Source of the DNA: Epithemia pelagica
Lineage: Eukaryota > Protista > Bacillariophyta
Reading direction: 5' to 3'
DNA length: 64,000 nucleotides
Assembly: GCA_946965045.2 (NCBI GenBank)
Contig: OX337240.1
Location: 2,294,001-2,358,000 of the forward strand
Shown one piece after another: positions 3,998 through 12,416 of this stretch (positions within the stretch are counted from its first letter, which is position 1; each line of letters starts with the position of its first letter). The position numbers were made by a program, and so were the translations under genes. A model generated the notes under the pieces. It made no database searches and was not told the DNA's origin. It saw only the letters and a program-made list of their open reading frames with translations.

Positions 3998-4543
3998 ATG
4001 TCTGTGGCAGAATGGGACAATGAATACGCTCGTCTTGCTCGAGCGGCATCGCAACTTCGAAGTGGGGTTGGCGTGGGCAATGATGCGTCCAGTTTGCAAA
4101 GCGCTTTGCAACGTCTGGAAGCCAGCCTCGAAAACTTACCCCTACAACCTACCGAAATTCAGAGGCGTCGTCGTCTGATTCAGCATCTTACCGAGTCGTC
4201 TTCTGGTTCTGGCTTGGATGCGTCTGGTGGAGGCTTGCAGCAACAGCAAGCACAAACCAAGATGCAACGTGCTATGCAAGAGCAAGACGCAATGATTGAT
4301 GAATTGGCCACCGGAATGGGTCGTTTAAAACACCAAACCCAAGCGATTCATGATGAAGCTGGTATGCATGTCAATCTTCTGAACGAGATGGAAACAAATC
4401 TGGACTCGGCGCAACAAGGATTGGAAGCTGAGACTCGTCGTGCCGCACGACTCAAGGAAGACCAGTCTGTATGGCGATTGCAGCTGATTGTTGCTGGTCT
4501 TTCTATTTTGCTTGTCATGCTCATTCTTCTTGGATTGTCTTAA
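3998..4543 (+). CDS. Qc-type t-SNARE (syntaxin-8/syntaxin-6-like)
   Basis: SNARE heptad QEQDAMIDELATGMGRLKHQTQAIHDEAGMHVNLLNEMETNLD and a C-terminal tail-anchor TM helix. Confidence 0.85.
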   Translation: MSVAEWDNEYARLARAASQLRSGVGVGNDASSLQSALQRLEASLENLPLQPTEIQRRRRLIQHLTESSSGSGLDASGGGLQQQQAQTKMQRAMQEQDAMIDELATGMGRLKHQTQAIHDEAGMHVNLLNEMETNLDSAQQGLEAETRRAARLKEDQSVWRLQLIVAGLSILLVMLILLGLS

Positions 4544-5109
4544 GAGGGGAAGCATTTTCATCCATAATTTTGTGGATGCAAGGATGGTATCCAAAGTCAA
4601 TTCCAGGGATGCGCTTTTGCTCTCTTCGAATGCCTCAGTATCAAACGAATGAAGGTGTTTTGTACTCTAGTCATTTCCGCTGATCCTTTCAACAGTTTAT
4701 TATTAGATCAGTCAACGTTCACTGCAAAACTTTTTCTTGTTTGGTTGTTTGGTACAAGCCGTCAATGCATGGCGACCACTCGCCTCTGCCTGTACACGGT
4801 TCACTTCGCTTCTCGACGACAAAATTCGTATTCACAGTGCATTAATAGCTGCTGTTCATTGTAAAAAGGAGCGAAATCGATCCAATGTTCGACCACAATC
4901 ATCCATCGTATGGAGGAAACGAGGACCAACATGCGACCACCGTCAATCTCGCATCTCGCGACCACAACAAGAACTTATGCTAGTTTCTCTAGAAGAATCA
5001 AAAAAACGATCAACATCACGAAACAACGACGTGAACTACAATCCGGACGACCCAAACACCATCCAAGCCAACGGAGGGAGTCCACTACGTACCTGAGAGC
5101 CCGCGTCCG

Positions 5110-8100
5110 ATGGTCACGCCTAGGGGGCGAAACGCGGACCCGCCATGGGTTTTTTTGGCTGCAAACCGAACTCCCATGGTCCACCCACGACCGAAATGCC
5201 GATCCGGCGCAACCGCACCCCCGCCAATCGGGACAAAACACATGAATCGCATGGCGAACCAACCTATGACCATGCAAACGCTCCATGGTCTGAGGAAATC
5301 CAAACCAAACGACCACGACGGCATACAGGCCCACCATGGTGCCCAAAAGGCCCAAAAGGCCCAAAGAAAAACCCCGGAGTCCAACACCAACGGTCATCCG
5401 CTCCCCACTCCAGCGACACGCCACAGCCAAACCGACACCCACACGAGGCAGGAGGAAAACAACCAACCAGGACCCGCCTCCAGGCCAGCCCACCAACCAA
5501 CAAACCGTCCTCAACCACCAACCAATCAAACCGGCACCAAACAATCGATGAACAGGAAAAGACACGACGCTACAGCCGTCCACCCACTCCCCGGCCAACT
5601 TCAACACCCAGACAACACCACGGCACCAAGAGCCGCAACAAGAACCACCGCCACCCAGACCGACCCACCGACACTTGTCGGCATCCAAGGACACATCCCA
5701 GATGGACCGAACCGAGCACCCAACAAGGGAAGACAACCGGCCAGTCATTTGCGAGCAATGAATGGTCATAGTCATAAAGCCAACTCATCGCAAGAAACGA
5801 ACAACGAAACCATCCTCACAAAAAATACGAAAACCAAGAGTTTTCCCCAGATTCGAACACCACCAGCACCCAGCAGCAACAACGCCGACAACAACCCACC
5901 AGCATCAACCATGCAAGTCCACTCCAAGCCCTCCTCCGGCCGCCGTCAGTCACGTGCCAAATCGCAAGGCCCAGCCAAACCCTTCTCGTACAACGACTCC
6001 ACCACCATTACCGCCATCACCCCTGAACGCCGCTCCCTCATCAACAAAACCAAAACCATCGCCCAAGAAAACAACAAACAAAAAGAAACAATGATTCCGA
6101 CCGAAAACCATAAAAACAAAACCCAGAAAAATGCAGCCCTCACCATGAACATTGATCCAAACCACCAACAACACGAAGAAGTCGAAAACCACGACGACAC
6201 CGAAGCCAACCCAGACACCGGCATGCAGCAGGACAACGACAACAACCACGCCCAGGAGCACAACGGCGCCAGCCACGAAAACAAAAACGGAAGCGAACCA
6301 GGCCTTCACGACAACCAAGGAGACCCGAACGGCCAAGCCCACAACGATGACCCCAACGACGCCGACCCGGCAAACAATGAGACGGAGGAAGAAGAAATGA
6401 ACGACGACGCCCAAACCAACACGGCAGCCAGCCCCTCCAACCCTTACCGCACCCTCAGGCAACCCCAAAAGCGCGCCCCTTCCCCAGAACCGGCGATGCT
6501 TATCCACCTACACGTCATGGTCAACCACAATCCGAACCCGCAAGCGGAATCGGCTCTGCCCCGTCTTACCGAACAAGCGGTCAAAGACCACTTGAACCAG
6601 GTATTTTTCCACCACAGCAAGCGCGAAGAGCCCATGTGGCTTCAAGTGCACAAAGTTGAATTCATTGAAACCAAACAAGCTGGACGCCCGAGCTTCCGCC
6701 AAAACGACCAACAGCGTCAACGCAACAACAACGGACATGTATCATCCTTCCATGTCACCTTGTCCCCCGCCCCCGCCAACGACGCCTTCGACACAGAAGT
6801 TTTCCGCGAACAAGGCCTTCGGTGTGTGCTACAGATGTGGCACCGTCACAAGAATGACGACTTCTCCCACGACGATTTCGGCGACCCAAGCATCCTGCGG
6901 AACGGAACGCCACAATCCAACCCAACCACCAACCCGCGCTGGGACCAATACAACGTGTACCTCCCAGCAAACAACAACAGGACCAGCGACACCTTCGGGA
7001 TGGTTGTTGGGATTCCAGCACAAGCCATTAAACACCGTCGGGCGGCACAGGACTTGACGGCAGCAATTCAGCACTCCCTCCGAGCCCATCTTCCACGCAA
7101 GCTGGACTGGACGGCCTTCTTCGACCACATCGGGTGCCGATCCGGAACCTTTAGTGGAGAACTCAAAAGCAAACAAAGAGGACAGGTCCCCGTCGTCTAC
7201 ATCACGGCCTCGTCTCGGGCCAACTTCGAACTGCTATTGCGCAGTTACAATGCATTCACAGCAGCCAACAGGGACACCGACATCACGTGGCAAGACAACA
7301 AGATCCAACTCATTCCGATGCCCAAAACCCAAACGAATCGAACAACGACGTTGGAAACAATTAAAGACATTGACCAATTCTTTGGTTCAAGCGTCAAGAT
7401 CCGCCTCCGTCCGATCAACACAGAAGCAACGGACGGCGATTGGAAACAACTCAAAACAATGGACGAGTACATCGCCGTATTCCCCGAATACGACAATGAA
7501 GATCCGGACCCCATCTACTACACATTGATCATGCGAAAGACACCGGACACACACCACTTGACCACCAATACAATCCGCACGCATCCAGGATTCCCGACTA
7601 ATATCCTGCTGCCTACTCTGGCCGCCGTGGCGGCAACCCCTCCGCGGCAACCAAGCACCAACCAGGACACACCGACATCCTCCACTCACACCAACAGGCT
7701 CATCGCCTTCGCAGACCGACTACTACGACGAAAGACCAACTCGGCAGAGGACCACAACCACCAACCAACAACATCAACCAGAGCTCGCAACACTCCACCA
7801 GGCACACCGCCTCCGACAAAAAGAACCGCCACCCACTTTTCAGACGACGGCAATGACGACGACGAAGATCCTTACAACGACGGCACAGACTGGACACAGG
7901 TCGCGACAAACATGGACCACAGCCACCAATACAATCGGCTCGCACACAAACCTGCGCAAAACGACGACCGCAAACCACCGGCACAACAAAACAGCTTTTC
8001 CGCCCTCGCAGAAGATGAACACTCCCACAACAACAAACGCCACCACGACGAGGACGACGTGGACAGAATGGAGACGGAAGAAGACAACGACGACGCACAC

Positions 8101-8400
8101 TCCCAGTCTCTCATCCCCCCGGACGATCTCGACGACAACGAGGCCCATCCGCAATACTCCGCACCAACAGGACACGAAATAGCACTGATCATGCAGTACG
8201 TCCGAAACAACAAACCGTCCCGCACCGCAGAGATGCGAAAATACCTGCAACAAACAAAATCATTCGCGAATGATACCGACGCGGAAGACGCCTGGCGCTA
8301 TGCTCAGTCTCTGGTTCAGACTAGCAGCTCCAGCGTCGCCGGCTCCCGCACCGGCCATGTGGTCCCGCATGCAACATGGGCCAAAGAGCAAAATGAGTAA
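5110..8400 (+). CDS. ORF1 of the CRE-like element, unknown function
   Basis: 1096-aa open frame: low-complexity N/P/T/Q-rich N-terminus, globular-looking middle (~aa 460-830), acidic tail. Its stop overlaps the ORF2 ATG. The true start codon may be downstream of 5110. Confidence 0.7.
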   Translation: MVTPRGRNADPPWVFLAANRTPMVHPRPKCRSGATAPPPIGTKHMNRMANQPMTMQTLHGLRKSKPNDHDGIQAHHGAQKAQKAQRKTPESNTNGHPLPTPATRHSQTDTHTRQEENNQPGPASRPAHQPTNRPQPPTNQTGTKQSMNRKRHDATAVHPLPGQLQHPDNTTAPRAATRTTATQTDPPTLVGIQGHIPDGPNRAPNKGRQPASHLRAMNGHSHKANSSQETNNETILTKNTKTKSFPQIRTPPAPSSNNADNNPPASTMQVHSKPSSGRRQSRAKSQGPAKPFSYNDSTTITAITPERRSLINKTKTIAQENNKQKETMIPTENHKNKTQKNAALTMNIDPNHQQHEEVENHDDTEANPDTGMQQDNDNNHAQEHNGASHENKNGSEPGLHDNQGDPNGQAHNDDPNDADPANNETEEEEMNDDAQTNTAASPSNPYRTLRQPQKRAPSPEPAMLIHLHVMVNHNPNPQAESALPRLTEQAVKDHLNQVFFHHSKREEPMWLQVHKVEFIETKQAGRPSFRQNDQQRQRNNNGHVSSFHVTLSPAPANDAFDTEVFREQGLRCVLQMWHRHKNDDFSHDDFGDPSILRNGTPQSNPTTNPRWDQYNVYLPANNNRTSDTFGMVVGIPAQAIKHRRAAQDLTAAIQHSLRAHLPRKLDWTAFFDHIGCRSGTFSGELKSKQRGQVPVVYITASSRANFELLLRSYNAFTAANRDTDITWQDNKIQLIPMPKTQTNRTTTLETIKDIDQFFGSSVKIRLRPINTEATDGDWKQLKTMDEYIAVFPEYDNEDPDPIYYTLIMRKTPDTHHLTTNTIRTHPGFPTNILLPTLAAVAATPPRQPSTNQDTPTSSTHTNRLIAFADRLLRRKTNSAEDHNHQPTTSTRARNTPPGTPPPTKRTATHFSDDGNDDDEDPYNDGTDWTQVATNMDHSHQYNRLAHKPAQNDDRKPPAQQNSFSALAEDEHSHNNKRHHDEDDVDRMETEEDNDDAHSQSLIPPDDLDDNEAHPQYSAPTGHEIALIMQYVRNNKPSRTAEMRKYLQQTKSFANDTDAEDAWRYAQSLVQTSSSSVAGSRTGHVVPHATWAKEQNE

Positions 8401-11400
8401 CCAAGAAATCCTTCCTCCGAGACACTGCCCGGTGCCCGACTGCCCATGGCAAGTGCCTCCACAATCCAACAAACCACATGCGTCCCTCAAGGAGCATCTC
8501 ATCACCACCCACGGGGAAACAAACCCCTCCGACTACATGACCACCAAATACTGCAGCCAACATGGGTTCCACTTGTGTCAAGAATGCGACACACCGACGA
8601 CAATATTCACAACACAAGGACACCTAAGAACACACATAACAAAAAAACATACTAGAAGTAAAACAAACATGCAACTAGTCCTTACAACCTACCGGAATAC
8701 AACGCCAGAGATCGAAAACAACTGGAAGCAAAGCCTTGCCTTCCTGAACCAACTTCGCCCAAGCCCGCCCCCGTTCAGACGGTCCATATGGCACAAGACC
8801 AAACCCCCACTCAGGTCAGAATTTTATGTCACGTATAACAACGTGATAAAATGGGTCCTCGAATCAACGCCGACGTTGGCCCCAGCAATCCTCCGTGATC
8901 ACACACTACCCAAACACGACACCGACTCCAGCCCCCTCTGGAAGCTATTGCTCCTCCTGGAACCATTACTGTTGGCCCCCATCCAAAACACCGTCCACTT
9001 GACATACTCCAACGCTTTCCGTGCCAGACTTTCCCTGCTCAAAACAGGAAGAATCGAGGAACTCTACAACACAATTTGGCACCCAACACCACTGCCGCTC
9101 CAACCACAAAACAGACAGCACAAGAAAAAACGACAACAGAAACAACGACTGAACACCCACAGCGACGGTCCAAACCTTCCACAGTGGAGACTCACCGCGG
9201 CCCAACACACCGCCGACCTGGGAAACTACCGAGCAGCACTCAAAAGGCTGACGACGAATACTCCAACAGCAACCTTAACCCCACCAAGAATTGCAAGATG
9301 TCAGACAGAACTTTTCCCAAAACGACGACAACCACCACCTGGTACACGAGCACAAGGCCACACCAACTTACCGCCACCAACAAACCAATACCTGAAGCTA
9401 GAAGACAACATGACCGAACTAGCACTCCGACAAATGAAACCCGGAACGGCATCGGGACCGTTCGCCACATGCACCGACATACTAGCCGCAATGGCATTAC
9501 ATCGAACAACACGAGCGAAAGACGCCACCAAGCCATACTTCGGAAACATAAAAGCTCTCCTCCAACTGGTGGTGACCGCTCAGGTACCTCCACCGATACA
9601 AACATTGCTTGCCAGCAATTATTTCTTGGCGCTGCACAAAGACATCACCAACCCAGAAAAATTACGACCGATCGGAATTGGAACGGCGATTCGAAGAGTT
9701 GCCGCCAAAACAGCTCTCGTCCATATGACGGACGACATCACGCCACTTCTCCTCAAGGGCGGACAATATGGGATCCAAATCCCAGGCGGGGTCGACTTTG
9801 TCGCCCAGACAACCGCCATGGCGGTCCGGGAATACATCGACAAACACACAGACAACCAAAACACACCAACAGACGACCACAATGACGACCAAAACAACAC
9901 AAAAACAGCAACAAACTCCCCAAGCCGAGCTCTGATTTTGCTTGACTTGACCAACATGTTCAATAACGTGTCGCGCACCGAAGCACGACGAATTCTCTTG
10001 TCAGAGGACGCGACTTGCCCCCTAGTCCCGATCTTTGACCTTCTTTCCAACCATCCTTGCGACTCGTGGTACTTCAACGAAAACCACGAACCACATACAC
10101 TGCAACAAGAAGAGGGATTCCCACAAGGGTGCCCACTTAGCCCATTGTTCTCGTGCTTAGTCCTTCTAGCACTCACGAACCAGTTAAACAAAGAACAAGC
10201 AAAACGTGCATCAACAAGAAAACAGTCAGGAGACATCGGAGACGATAACAAAGGTGGTGTCGCTCATACGGCCTCGATAATGGACGACACATCCGTTTGT
10301 CTACCTCATTGTGACCTACCTTGGTTCCTCTCCCGCTTCCAAGAGCTTGGAGCTCCGCTCGGGATCATCCTCAATCACTCCAAAACCAAAATATTAACAA
10401 CGACCACCGGCAACACGGCCTGCGACACATTGCCCCGCCAAGCACAACAAAAAGTCCAGGAAGCACTATCCTTCCTCTGCCCCGATGAACCAGAACGGGC
10501 CGAAATCACCACAGGAGTCCGTTTCCTCGGACAGCCCATCGGCTCCCACGTATTTGCCAAACAATACATCAGAGAACGGTTAGACAAAATGGTCGACACA
10601 ATGGATCGTATCAGCCAACTCCAAAACTTACAGACACAACACACGCTGTACAAATTCTCTTTGGTTGCATCAATCATGCATTTGCTCCCATCCGACATCA
10701 CCCTTGCCAATCCCGCAGGCGATCAACGATCAACAATGTGGGACAGCGACACCACGAGACGAACCGACAAACTGACAGCACGCTTCCTCGCCCGTCTCAC
10801 CTCCACCAGAGACACGGACGTCAACGAAACAGCGATAATTATTGCGTCACTCCCTCAACGCCTAGGAGGCCTTGGTTACCAAATGGCCTCCTCCGCAGCA
10901 TACCCGCGATTTCTCACTCAGACCGTGAGAGCAATCAAACTTGCGTCGTCCACAGACACACCTATTCCACACGTCCACAGCCGGCCCTTCCTCAACTGGG
11001 AAGACTCCACCACATCAACCATGACCAAATTCCGTAAAGGCCTCTCGCTTTTTGCCCACGAACTGGCAGACAAAGCTCTTTATACCCCATCTCGGTATGA
11101 CAAAAACACACACAACAGTATGATGAACCACATCATGAGAGAACACGCAATCGAAAGACTGTTCACGATAACAGACGCCAACCAACGCATCTTCTTACCT
11201 TCACTGCTCTCCCCACTCACAAGCATGGTCTTTTCTCTGCCGTTGACAGCCTCCGAATTCCGACTTGAGAACGCGGTCTTCAAAACGGCAATGAAGAGAA
11301 AATTACGTCTACCAGTTTTCTCCCAAGACCCCAACCAACCGGCTCCTCATTCTTGCAAATGTGCCAAGAAAACCATACTCGACGCACACGGGGACCACTT

Positions 11401-12307
11401 GTTTTCGTGCAGCGCCGCCTCAAAGACTCCCCTATCGAACGCGATCAGAGACACCCTTTTTGATGTCCTGCGCCAAATAGCACCAGCAGCAAAAACAGTG
11501 GACACAAGTCTGGATGTCCATATAGAACCGCCTGGATTGGCTCCTCAGCACAACCGAAACATCCGGCCGGCGGACGTCGGTATGCTCCTTCGACAACCAC
11601 ACCGAAACCAGCACTTTCGATACGCCGCTATCGATATAACAGTCCCCCCTCCACAGAAACCACTGCCCATCCTGGACCCGTCTGACCACGAAAACATTGC
11701 CTGTATGGCCTCCAAGACGCACCAGGACGCAGCGCGTGACAAATTCTGCCGAGACCCCACCACTGCACAACACCTCTACGACAACGGGGTATACCTCCTC
11801 CCCTTTACGGTCGATCACCTCGGAGGCTTAGGTTCTTTCGCTGAACACCTGCTTTTCCCCAGTGAACACCAACCACACCTCTTTCATCCGGGCAAACCTC
11901 CAACGTGGGACGACCCACACTTCGGAAAAAACAGTCTTCGCAGCAGTGCACACCCACAAGCCTTCGCACTCTTTCAGGAAACCACTCACGCCCCGGCCAA
12001 TCTTCTCACCGCAGCCAACAAAGAGACAAAAAGATTTTGCTACCCAGAAGCCCATATATACTCGATGGGTCACTTTGCCAAGGCATCCCTCAGCCACGCC
12101 ATCGTCACAAGCTTGGCAATCCATGTCAACAACCACATGACAGCCATCCACCAATATCACACCGCCCGACAGAAACGAACGACCCAATTGCAAAATCTTT
12201 CACGGCCATTTTTTGCACCTATAACTCCAATATACTCCCCGGCCAGCATGGCACACTACCTGCCCACCGCGGCAACCGCCCCACTTCTCTGCGAACTCGC
12301 CGCTTAG
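8393..12307 (+). CDS. ORF2: two C2H2 zinc fingers + reverse transcriptase + CCHC + restriction-like endonuclease
   Basis: Zinc fingers CPVPDC...HLITTH and CQEC...HITKKH. RT motifs KLRPIGIG, LLDLTNMFNNVSR, GFPQGCPLSP, IMDD, GVRFLGQPIG and LGGLG. CKC...GDHLFSC, then RPADV...IDITV. Confidence 0.9.
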   Translation: MSNQEILPPRHCPVPDCPWQVPPQSNKPHASLKEHLITTHGETNPSDYMTTKYCSQHGFHLCQECDTPTTIFTTQGHLRTHITKKHTRSKTNMQLVLTTYRNTTPEIENNWKQSLAFLNQLRPSPPPFRRSIWHKTKPPLRSEFYVTYNNVIKWVLESTPTLAPAILRDHTLPKHDTDSSPLWKLLLLLEPLLLAPIQNTVHLTYSNAFRARLSLLKTGRIEELYNTIWHPTPLPLQPQNRQHKKKRQQKQRLNTHSDGPNLPQWRLTAAQHTADLGNYRAALKRLTTNTPTATLTPPRIARCQTELFPKRRQPPPGTRAQGHTNLPPPTNQYLKLEDNMTELALRQMKPGTASGPFATCTDILAAMALHRTTRAKDATKPYFGNIKALLQLVVTAQVPPPIQTLLASNYFLALHKDITNPEKLRPIGIGTAIRRVAAKTALVHMTDDITPLLLKGGQYGIQIPGGVDFVAQTTAMAVREYIDKHTDNQNTPTDDHNDDQNNTKTATNSPSRALILLDLTNMFNNVSRTEARRILLSEDATCPLVPIFDLLSNHPCDSWYFNENHEPHTLQQEEGFPQGCPLSPLFSCLVLLALTNQLNKEQAKRASTRKQSGDIGDDNKGGVAHTASIMDDTSVCLPHCDLPWFLSRFQELGAPLGIILNHSKTKILTTTTGNTACDTLPRQAQQKVQEALSFLCPDEPERAEITTGVRFLGQPIGSHVFAKQYIRERLDKMVDTMDRISQLQNLQTQHTLYKFSLVASIMHLLPSDITLANPAGDQRSTMWDSDTTRRTDKLTARFLARLTSTRDTDVNETAIIIASLPQRLGGLGYQMASSAAYPRFLTQTVRAIKLASSTDTPIPHVHSRPFLNWEDSTTSTMTKFRKGLSLFAHELADKALYTPSRYDKNTHNSMMNHIMREHAIERLFTITDANQRIFLPSLLSPLTSMVFSLPLTASEFRLENAVFKTAMKRKLRLPVFSQDPNQPAPHSCKCAKKTILDAHGDHLFSCSAASKTPLSNAIRDTLFDVLRQIAPAAKTVDTSLDVHIEPPGLAPQHNRNIRPADVGMLLRQPHRNQHFRYAAIDITVPPPQKPLPILDPSDHENIACMASKTHQDAARDKFCRDPTTAQHLYDNGVYLLPFTVDHLGGLGSFAEHLLFPSEHQPHLFHPGKPPTWDDPHFGKNSLRSSAHPQAFALFQETTHAPANLLTAANKETKRFCYPEAHIYSMGHFAKASLSHAIVTSLAIHVNNHMTAIHQYHTARQKRTTQLQNLSRPFFAPITPIYSPASMAHYLPTAATAPLLCELAA

Positions 12308-12330
12308 AAGTTCCCCCAAACACTAGAGCG

Positions 12331-12356
12331 TAAAATAAAATAAAAAAATAAAAAAA
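12331..12356 (+). repeat. A-rich 3' tail of the non-LTR element
   Basis: taaaataaaataaaaaaataaaaaaa directly after the ORF2 3' UTR. Confidence 0.8.
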
Positions 12357-12416
12357 TTCTTTTCCCATTCTATTGGCATCACGTCAGATATGAACGTTTA
12401 CCGTCAATGATGAACA

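Follow-up and report, generated by a model that had tools for sequence, protein, structure and literature searches.

A probable two-ORF LINE of the restriction-like-endonuclease type in a diatom genome, with a predicted RRM fold in its large ORF1

We analysed a 64,000-nucleotide stretch (hereafter the window) of the diatom Epithemia pelagica (assembly GCA_946965045.2, contig OX337240.1, positions 2,294,001 to 2,358,000), in which positions 5020-12356 of the plus strand hold one intact copy of a non-LTR (long terminal repeat) retrotransposon; its 5′ start may alternatively be placed at 5000. Two long open reading frames (ORFs) lie on the same strand, at 5110-8400 (ORF1, 1096 aa) and at 8270-12307 (ORF2, 1345 aa from its first ATG), and an A-rich tail closes the element at 12356 (Table 1). 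The first-pass annotation of this DNA had proposed both intact ORFs, a common A/C strand skew and the A-rich tail, and all of these hold: the skew is confined to ~4900-12400, with a GC skew of -0.2 to -0.38 and an AT skew of up to +0.6. Its 5′ limit of 5110 was wrong, as comparison of copies places the real 5′ end at 5020 (or 5000). The 5′ terminus, GAAACAACGA(C/G)GTGAACTACAA, is conserved among copies and is the same in two subfamilies, A and B, that are just 74% identical overall. At the other end, the copies finish with ...CTAGAGCGTAAAATAAAA (across copies, ...CTAGAG(C/A)GTAAAA(C)TAAAA), followed by an A-rich tail of variable make-up.

Anatomy of ORF2 and genomic copies

The product of ORF2 carries, in order, two C2H2 fingers, a reverse transcriptase (RT), a CCHC motif and an E-PD-D-K nuclease motif, in agreement with the finger-RT-CCHC-nuclease order first assigned to it. 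We examined it in two alignments. The first comprises 26 sequences, namely ORF2 and 25 homologues at 25-69% identity (one Thalassiosira pseudonana 'predicted protein', the others from ENA assemblies, JGI or Logan data), and the second covers the C-terminal region in 28 sequences, including 27 metagenomic relatives. Pfam RVT_1 is the sole Pfam domain of ORF2 (aa 542-755, E=1.6e-9), and the first alignment contains all RT motifs as well as the GGLG motif of the thumb. Searched against the PDB, the ORF2 profile matched, via its RT, R2Tg (9dou, 1.9e-9), R2Bm (8gh6, 3.8e-5) and L1 ORF2p (8sxt, 4.9e-5). The RT is separated from the CCHC motif by a long linker of about 357 aa. Downstream of it, residues K1052, R1060, E1086, R1099-P1100, D1122 and K1158 are invariant in the first alignment and D1102 is kept in at least 90% of its sequences; in the second, the C, C, H, C, E, PD, D and K positions are all invariant. 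K1158 lies 36 residues past the second aspartate, D1122, and the R2 endonuclease has been shown experimentally to use a lysine at the same non-canonical position (PMC4838377). At the level of motifs, ORF2 is thus of the restriction-like endonuclease (RLE) type, with a putative nuclease fold.

The Pfam scan of ORF2 found no apurinic/apyrimidinic endonuclease (APE) domain (Exo_endo_phos) and no RNase H domain. Dualen/RandI elements unite APE, RNase H and RLE in a single protein; on the absence of the first two, a Dualen element was rejected. Neither did the scan find the C48/Ulp1 protease of NeSL/Utopia, and the flanks of the copies are likewise unrelated and non-repetitive. A Myb domain, as in R2, was not found by the same scan, which is weak evidence on this point.

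A DNA search of the 60.5-Mb, 23-contig assembly, in which the window lies on contig 16, recovered three more full-length copies at 100%, 99% and 97% identity, giving four in the genome with the window copy. There are 5′-truncated copies at 92% and 94% identity; L005 and L009 are 5′-truncated and share the same 3′ terminus. Older subfamilies stand at 74% identity (L006-L008, L022), and many further loci at ~67-71%. The LINE-type (long interspersed element) RT, the common 3′ end, the A-rich tails and the 5′-truncated copies are all features of a LINE, for which the absence of LTRs also counts, and an LTR or DIRS element was rejected.

The near-identity of the copies (97-100%) indicates recent activity, as had been suggested from the intact window copy. 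We considered whether such copies might instead stem from segmental duplication or from redundancy in the assembly. Only one of 7349 nt separates the window copy from L002 (chromosome 7), and their match begins 20 nt 5′ of where L003, L004, L006 and L007 begin, so that the two share 20 nt past the canonical 5′ end. Copy-to-copy identity, however, ends exactly at the limits of the element, the flanks of nine copies are mutually unrelated and those of the window copy are unique in the genome. The A-rich tails differ between copies in sequence and length, and the truncated copies end at the same 3′ terminus. The shared 20 nt also fit a 5′ transduction from an upstream transcription start. Duplication is accordingly very improbable, and we retain recent retrotransposition. 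In L002 the 20 nt (L002:1501-1520) sit inside a longer A-rich tract; the extension may have been acquired by 5′ transduction, through transcription that began slightly upstream, or may consist of additional nucleotides at the 5′ junction, and it suggests that the window copy is a daughter copy with a short 5′ transduction.

The same flanks bear on the choice of target. The first-pass annotation had placed the insertion in ordinary intergenic DNA, and a site outside any fixed repeat is upheld by the unique flanks in the window and the unrelated flanks of the copies. Judged by the flanks of the nine copies and of the window, there is neither the spliced-leader RNA gene insertion that is a trait of CRE elements nor a shared repeat target such as the 28S rDNA of R2. 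Unrelated flanks argue against CRE-like spliced-leader targeting, and the element apparently has no fixed target sequence. A 36-bp perfect match to window positions 4964-4999, ending at the insertion junction, occurs once elsewhere (L031, G000:C3:40679-40714, minus strand); the sequences diverge on both sides of it, and it is not an empty site.

Table 1. Features of the element in the window (positions are those of the window; AF2, AlphaFold2; aa, residues of the respective ORF product; pLDDT, predicted local distance difference test; UTR, untranslated region)
Feature	Positions	Strand	Basis or remark
5′ extension, 20 nt, aaaaaaacgatcaacatcac	5000..5019	+	Common to window copy and L002 only
5′ UTR, 90 nt, terminus GAAACAACGACGTGAACTACAA	5020..5109	+	Kept in subfamilies A (window, L003, L004) and B (L006, L007)
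ORF1, 1096 aa	5110..8400	+	Upstream of ORF2 in every subfamily
N-terminal low-complexity region, aa 1-455, N/T/P/Q/H/K-rich	5110..6474	+	Poorly conserved, dN/dS 0.56
Predicted core domain 1, aa 464-622, ferredoxin-like/SEA-like alpha/beta	6499..6975	+	AF2 pLDDT above 90
Predicted core domain 2, aa 625-738, RRM fold	6982..7323	+	Best PDB matches are the human LINE-1 ORF1p RRM
Predicted core domain 3, aa 740-838, small alpha/beta domain	7327..7623	+	AF2 pLDDT about 95; no distinct structural match
Predicted C-terminal three-helix bundle, aa 1018-1070	8161..8319	+	AF2 pLDDT 83-95; dN/dS 0.11
Block of high nucleotide conservation, including invariant CGCACCGGCCATGTGGTCCCGCATG (25 nt)	8346..8392	+	Majority fraction 0.93 versus 0.6-0.8 nearby
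Stop/start overlap AUGAGUAA	8393..8400	+	ORF2 AUG at 8393-8395, ORF1 stop at 8398-8400
ORF2 from conserved AUG, 1304 aa	8393..12307	+	Frame also open from upstream ATG at 8270
Two N-terminal C2H2 fingers (C53/C58/H76/H81; C103/C106/H122/H127)	8426..8650	+	Alignment; region aligns with R2Tg finger in profile search
RT fingers and palm	9635..10549	+	Pfam RVT_1, invariant motifs, profile matches
RT catalytic D672-D673	10283-10288	+	Invariant in first alignment
CCHC motif (C1029, C1031, H1043, C1047)	11354..11410	+	Invariant in 26- and 28-sequence alignments
RLE motifs K1052, R1060, E1086, R1099-P1100-x-D1102, D1122, K1158, P1178..G1185	11423..11839	+	Conserved columns
Stem-loop ACUUCU..(GCG..CGC)..AGAAGU across ORF2 stop codon	12283..12311	+	RNAalifold consensus of seven copies
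3′ UTR, conserved ..ACACTAGAGCGTAAAATAAAA, plus variable A-rich tail	12308..12356	+	Copy comparison

ORF1: linkage, selection and predicted structure

Wherever a subfamily locus extends far enough, ORF2 is immediately preceded by an ORF1 homologue (50-68% aa identity), and L006 and L007 have the two ORFs intact. Relatives of the two-ORF family were found in many marine and freshwater metagenome contigs. A scan of these contigs identified 80 loci carrying ORF2 relatives (25-37% identity); 38 of the loci, with ORF2 identities of 25-36%, have at least 1.5 kb of upstream sequence. In 37 of the 38, an open frame of at least 100 aa on the same strand ends near the start of ORF2 (367-1412 aa in 35 of them), and 26 of these 37 frames join the ORF1 family by phmmer. 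One metagenome contig, Ga0209092_10000140 (L104:1-10144), has a partial ORF2 that is followed immediately, in the same orientation, by a full ORF1-ORF2 unit, an arrangement that suggests a tandem or nested insertion in a relative.

Selection was measured as the ratio of nonsynonymous to synonymous substitution rates (dN/dS) between subfamilies A and B. Within ORF1, the core has a ratio of 0.08, the C-terminal helices have one of 0.11, the linker between them one of 0.40 and the N-terminal 455 aa one of 0.56; ORF2 stands at 0.11. The first-pass annotation had proposed a bicistronic RLE element and had named ORF2 copies without ORF1 as the finding that would speak against it; none were seen among the subfamily loci that extend far enough, and both ORFs are under selection.

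An exhaustive profile search of 1.84 billion representative proteins returned only 47 clusters that match ORF1, and in distant homologues at 17-31% identity the conserved motif blocks are kept, including the C-terminal helices. ORF1 itself has no sequence match in Pfam or, by phmmer and profile search, in the PDB; its best score in the protein atlas, 0.79, is unusable. A zinc knuckle is absent, in line with the earlier remark that ORF1 has no gag knuckle, and the protein contains three cysteines only. A Pfam scan of ten long homologues detected no domain except in P0073, a distant homologue whose ORF1 core carries, fused at the N-terminal side, a hybrid-binding domain of the RNase H1 type (Pfam Cauli_VI, E=1.3e-16). 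The combination is a hint of nucleic-acid binding.

A rival explanation is that ORF1 is no functional gene of the element but an open frame made by base composition, or an adjacent or captured host gene. The sense strand is poor in T, long spurious ORFs are common there (several were listed), the protein lacks Pfam and PDB sequence matches, and its first 455 aa are of low complexity and weakly constrained. The dN/dS of the core, the motif blocks retained by homologues at 17-31% identity, an AF2 pLDDT above 90 across 375 residues and the presence of ORF1 beside ORF2 in every subfamily and most metagenomic relatives all speak to the contrary. We regard this explanation as having a negligible chance, and for the ORF1 core it is effectively refuted. 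From these comparisons of sequence, ORF1 belongs integrally to the element and is under selection.

We modelled a 653-residue stretch of ORF1 by AF2 with a 25-sequence alignment, and domains 2-3 also alone. The core (aa 464-838) is predicted with pLDDT above 90 as three alpha/beta domains, joined by a disordered linker to the C-terminal helix bundle; domains 2-3 on their own reached a pLDDT of 95.6. Domain 1 gave structural matches (VIA) to SEA, S6 and RNA recognition motif (RRM) folds at Z 5-7.4, which are generic. For domain 2, the top three of 48,161 PDB chains were all the RRM of human L1 ORF1p, namely 2w7a_B (Z 7.4, 95/99 aligned, rmsd 4.2), 2ldy (Z 7.2) and 2yko (Z 6.1); the next match fell to Z 5.4, and the matches below the top three were mostly RRMs. 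Foldseek searches with domains 2-3 returned mostly tandem-RRM proteins as top matches (E ~5e-3 to 3e-2), those with the whole 653-residue model gave weak multi-domain matches, and a viral structure library yielded no match to the ORF1 model.

The RRM fold is thus well supported, but kinship with L1 ORF1p is only a lead, because the Z-scores are middling and there is no sequence similarity. Other hallmarks of an L1-type ORF1p were looked for and not seen: there is no Pfam Transposase_22 match, the C-terminal domain (CTD) of L1 ORF1p does not align and AF2 places no long helix before the core. The first-pass annotation had suspected an RNA-binding fold at about aa 460-830. The folded, RRM-containing core is recovered by AF2 and Foldseek, and RNA binding itself is a putative property; the ORF1 core is, on these predictions, an RNA-binding-like module of ~375 residues. 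In the linker (~7624-8160), which is disordered and acidic, the motifs PPPxKR (resembling a nuclear localization signal), DPYDDGTDW and KPPAxxNQFAPLAE are conserved across subfamilies.

Coupling of the two ORFs and the 3′ end

The ORF2 AUG sits 2 nt ahead of the ORF1 stop codon. All 15 of the 15 copies compared across subfamilies have this junction as AUGAGUAA, or as AUGAGUGA in L020. Metagenomic relatives show UAAUG (seven), UGAUG (one), AUGUUAA (two) or other arrangements with an AUG close to the stop, and the relative frame of ORF1 and ORF2 varies among them (0, 1 or 2) with the stop/start juxtaposition kept. Immediately upstream, CGCACCGGCCATGTGGTCCCGCATG and a GGGCCAA motif are nearly invariant across subfamilies that are ~69% identical overall, and the synonymous sites of ORF1 are also conserved within the 8346-8392 block. 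This block may be a reinitiation-promoting RNA element resembling a termination upstream ribosome-binding site (TURBS), and the conserved junction suggests that ORF2 is translated by termination-reinitiation.

An alternative is that the overlap serves programmed +1 ribosomal frameshifting, by which an ORF1-ORF2 fusion would be made instead of a separately initiated ORF2 product. Relative to ORF1, the frame of ORF2 is +1, and it stays open for ~210 nt upstream of the ORF1 stop; a database protein, P0042, reads through as a fusion. On a strand so poor in T, however, an open overlap of this length would be expected in any case, and P0042 is most simply a copy with a frameshift mutation. The ratio of nonsynonymous to synonymous changes (pN/pS) upstream of 8393 is 0.34 in the ORF1 frame as against 1.10 in the ORF2 frame, a value like the 1.41 of the third, non-coding frame. 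Because the substitutions there fit the ORF1 frame only, the long ORF2 from ATG-8270 is probably not used and a frameshift fusion in the overlap is unlikely. Further, an AUG no more than 5 nt from the stop is invariant in the copies, and the relatives keep the juxtaposition although their relative frames differ. We therefore hold frameshifting to be improbable and favour termination-reinitiation.

At the 3′ end, the stem-loop that spans the ORF2 stop codon contains a compensatory change from U-A to C-G in two divergent copies, L010 and L013. With this one covarying pair and an overlap with coding sequence, the structure is at most a tentative candidate for an element recognized or bound by the RT.

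Interpretation and comparison with known LINEs

We interpret 5020-12356 as an intact, recently active and obligately bicistronic RLE-type LINE of a diatom lineage, and give this reading, with the mechanism proposed here, a probability of about 0.75. The element would work as follows. ORF1p would be the RNA-binding and chaperone component of the ribonucleoprotein particle, the role that ORF1p has in APE-type LINEs. ORF2 would be translated by termination-reinitiation at AUGAGUAA, making ORF2p scarce relative to ORF1p. ORF2p would then nick chromosomal DNA without a fixed target sequence and copy the RNA of the element by target-primed reverse transcription, with the 3′ stem-loop and the A-rich tail as the starting point. 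The frequent 5′ truncation of copies is consistent with target-primed reverse transcription.

Several results weigh against this reading. The upstream frames of 11 of the 37 relatives do not link to the ORF1 family by phmmer. These relatives (L062, L070, L072, L100 and L108; L056 and L068; L061; L067; L078; L080) have upstream frames of 102-1412 aa, which may be very divergent or different forms of ORF1. The R2 nuclease went undetected by sequence in the PDB, both with the full ORF2 profile and with a C-terminal CCHC-RLE profile. A Z-score of 7.4 to the L1 ORF1p RRM is 'middling' on the tool's own calibration, in which values below 8 are no proof of kinship. The copy search proposed by the first-pass annotation defined the 5′ end and showed no fixed target, but inspection of nine junction pairs by eye defined no target-site duplication and no empty site was found; for this reason the details of target-primed reverse transcription are inferred.

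Our comparison with the RLE clades rests on their published descriptions. RLE LINEs are described as having a single ORF and no ORF1, which came with APE (PMC5678591, PMC3894237), and the first-pass annotation had described them in the same way. Four of the five RLE clades insert mostly at specific targets, and HERO holds many non-target-specific families (PMC4640811). The diatom element resembles R2, R4, CRE, NeSL/Utopia and HERO in its N-terminal C2H2 fingers, RT, CCHC motif and C-terminal PD-(D/E)XK-type motifs with a distant lysine, and in its lack of APE; the solved RTs nearest to its own are those of R2Tg and R2Bm. It differs in that the RLE clades are described as single-ORF and mostly targeted, whereas the diatom family always has an ORF1 of ~1100 aa and no fixed target was seen. 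The non-target-specific families of HERO fit the unrelated flanks of the diatom copies. In the literature searched, neither an RRM-type ORF1 in a HERO element nor a two-ORF RLE element in diatoms was described, Repbase being outside both searches.

CRE elements (CRE1/2, SLACS, CZAR) share with the diatom element the RLE, the N-terminal fingers and a poly(A)-like tail. They occupy one position of spliced-leader RNA genes and most are single-ORF, two ORFs having formerly been reported for Trypanosoma cruzi elements (PMC12278014), and they are said often to have a deletion of the linker relative to R2 (PMC5678591). In contrast, the diatom copies lie at unique, unrelated sites, and the RT-CCHC linker is long. 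The first-pass annotation had called the element CRE-like; the one CRE trait examined, insertion into spliced-leader genes, is absent.

The other side of the comparison concerns ORF1. In ORF1p proteins, one or two RRMs are typically combined with either a coiled coil or CCHC knuckles (PMC3905857). Like LINE-1, the diatom element has an upstream ORF with a predicted RRM, and the RRM of L1 ORF1p is its structurally closest PDB domain. Unlike L1 ORF1p, the diatom protein is ~3x larger and has no sequence similarity, coiled coil, CTD match or CCHC knuckles to set beside it; it has instead three predicted alpha/beta domains, a disordered N-terminus of 455 aa and a C-terminal helical bundle, and its partner is of the RLE and not the APE type. 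SART1, an APE-type telomere-specific LINE, couples its ORF1 and ORF2 through UAAUG (PMC3894237, citing Kojima et al. 2005). Relatives of the diatom element have exactly this sequence, and the diatom copies themselves have the 8-nt AUGAGUAA in its place.

In the standard account, ancient RLE elements encoded one protein and were site-specific, and both ORF1 and sequence-independent insertion came with APE (PMC3894237, PMC5678591). What would be new here is a clade of RLE LINEs in which a large ORF1 with an RRM is obligatory and is coupled to ORF2 by stop/start overlap, set apart from the known clades by their descriptions. Such a clade would break the standard pattern, being bicistronic, apparently not site-specific and recently active, with an ORF1p whose predicted RRM resembles that of L1 ORF1p. 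A further and doubtful extension is that the RRM-type ORF1p and stop/start coupling were already present in, or were exchanged with, the RLE lineage and are not innovations of APE-type LINEs. If that were true, this diatom and marine clade would be a living intermediate combining an RLE nuclease with an L1-like ORF1p, and either the origin of ORF1p would predate the switch from RLE to APE or ORF1 would have been exchanged modularly between the two great groups of LINEs. The family would offer a tractable case for asking whether an element that has given up a protected multicopy target needs an RNA-chaperone ORF1p, and whether ORF1p arose once or repeatedly. It also provides a compact, conserved candidate signal for stop/start reinitiation in a eukaryote, along with the RNA-binding-like module of ORF1.

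Upstream of the element, an ORF at window positions 3998-4543 encodes a protein with a hydrophobic tail at its C-terminus; Pfam matches it weakly to Use1/syntaxin-like families (E=1.4e-3, below cutoff), and it is probably a tail-anchored SNARE-like host gene. This host-like ORF ends ~460 nt upstream of the element, and the insertion is therefore intergenic.

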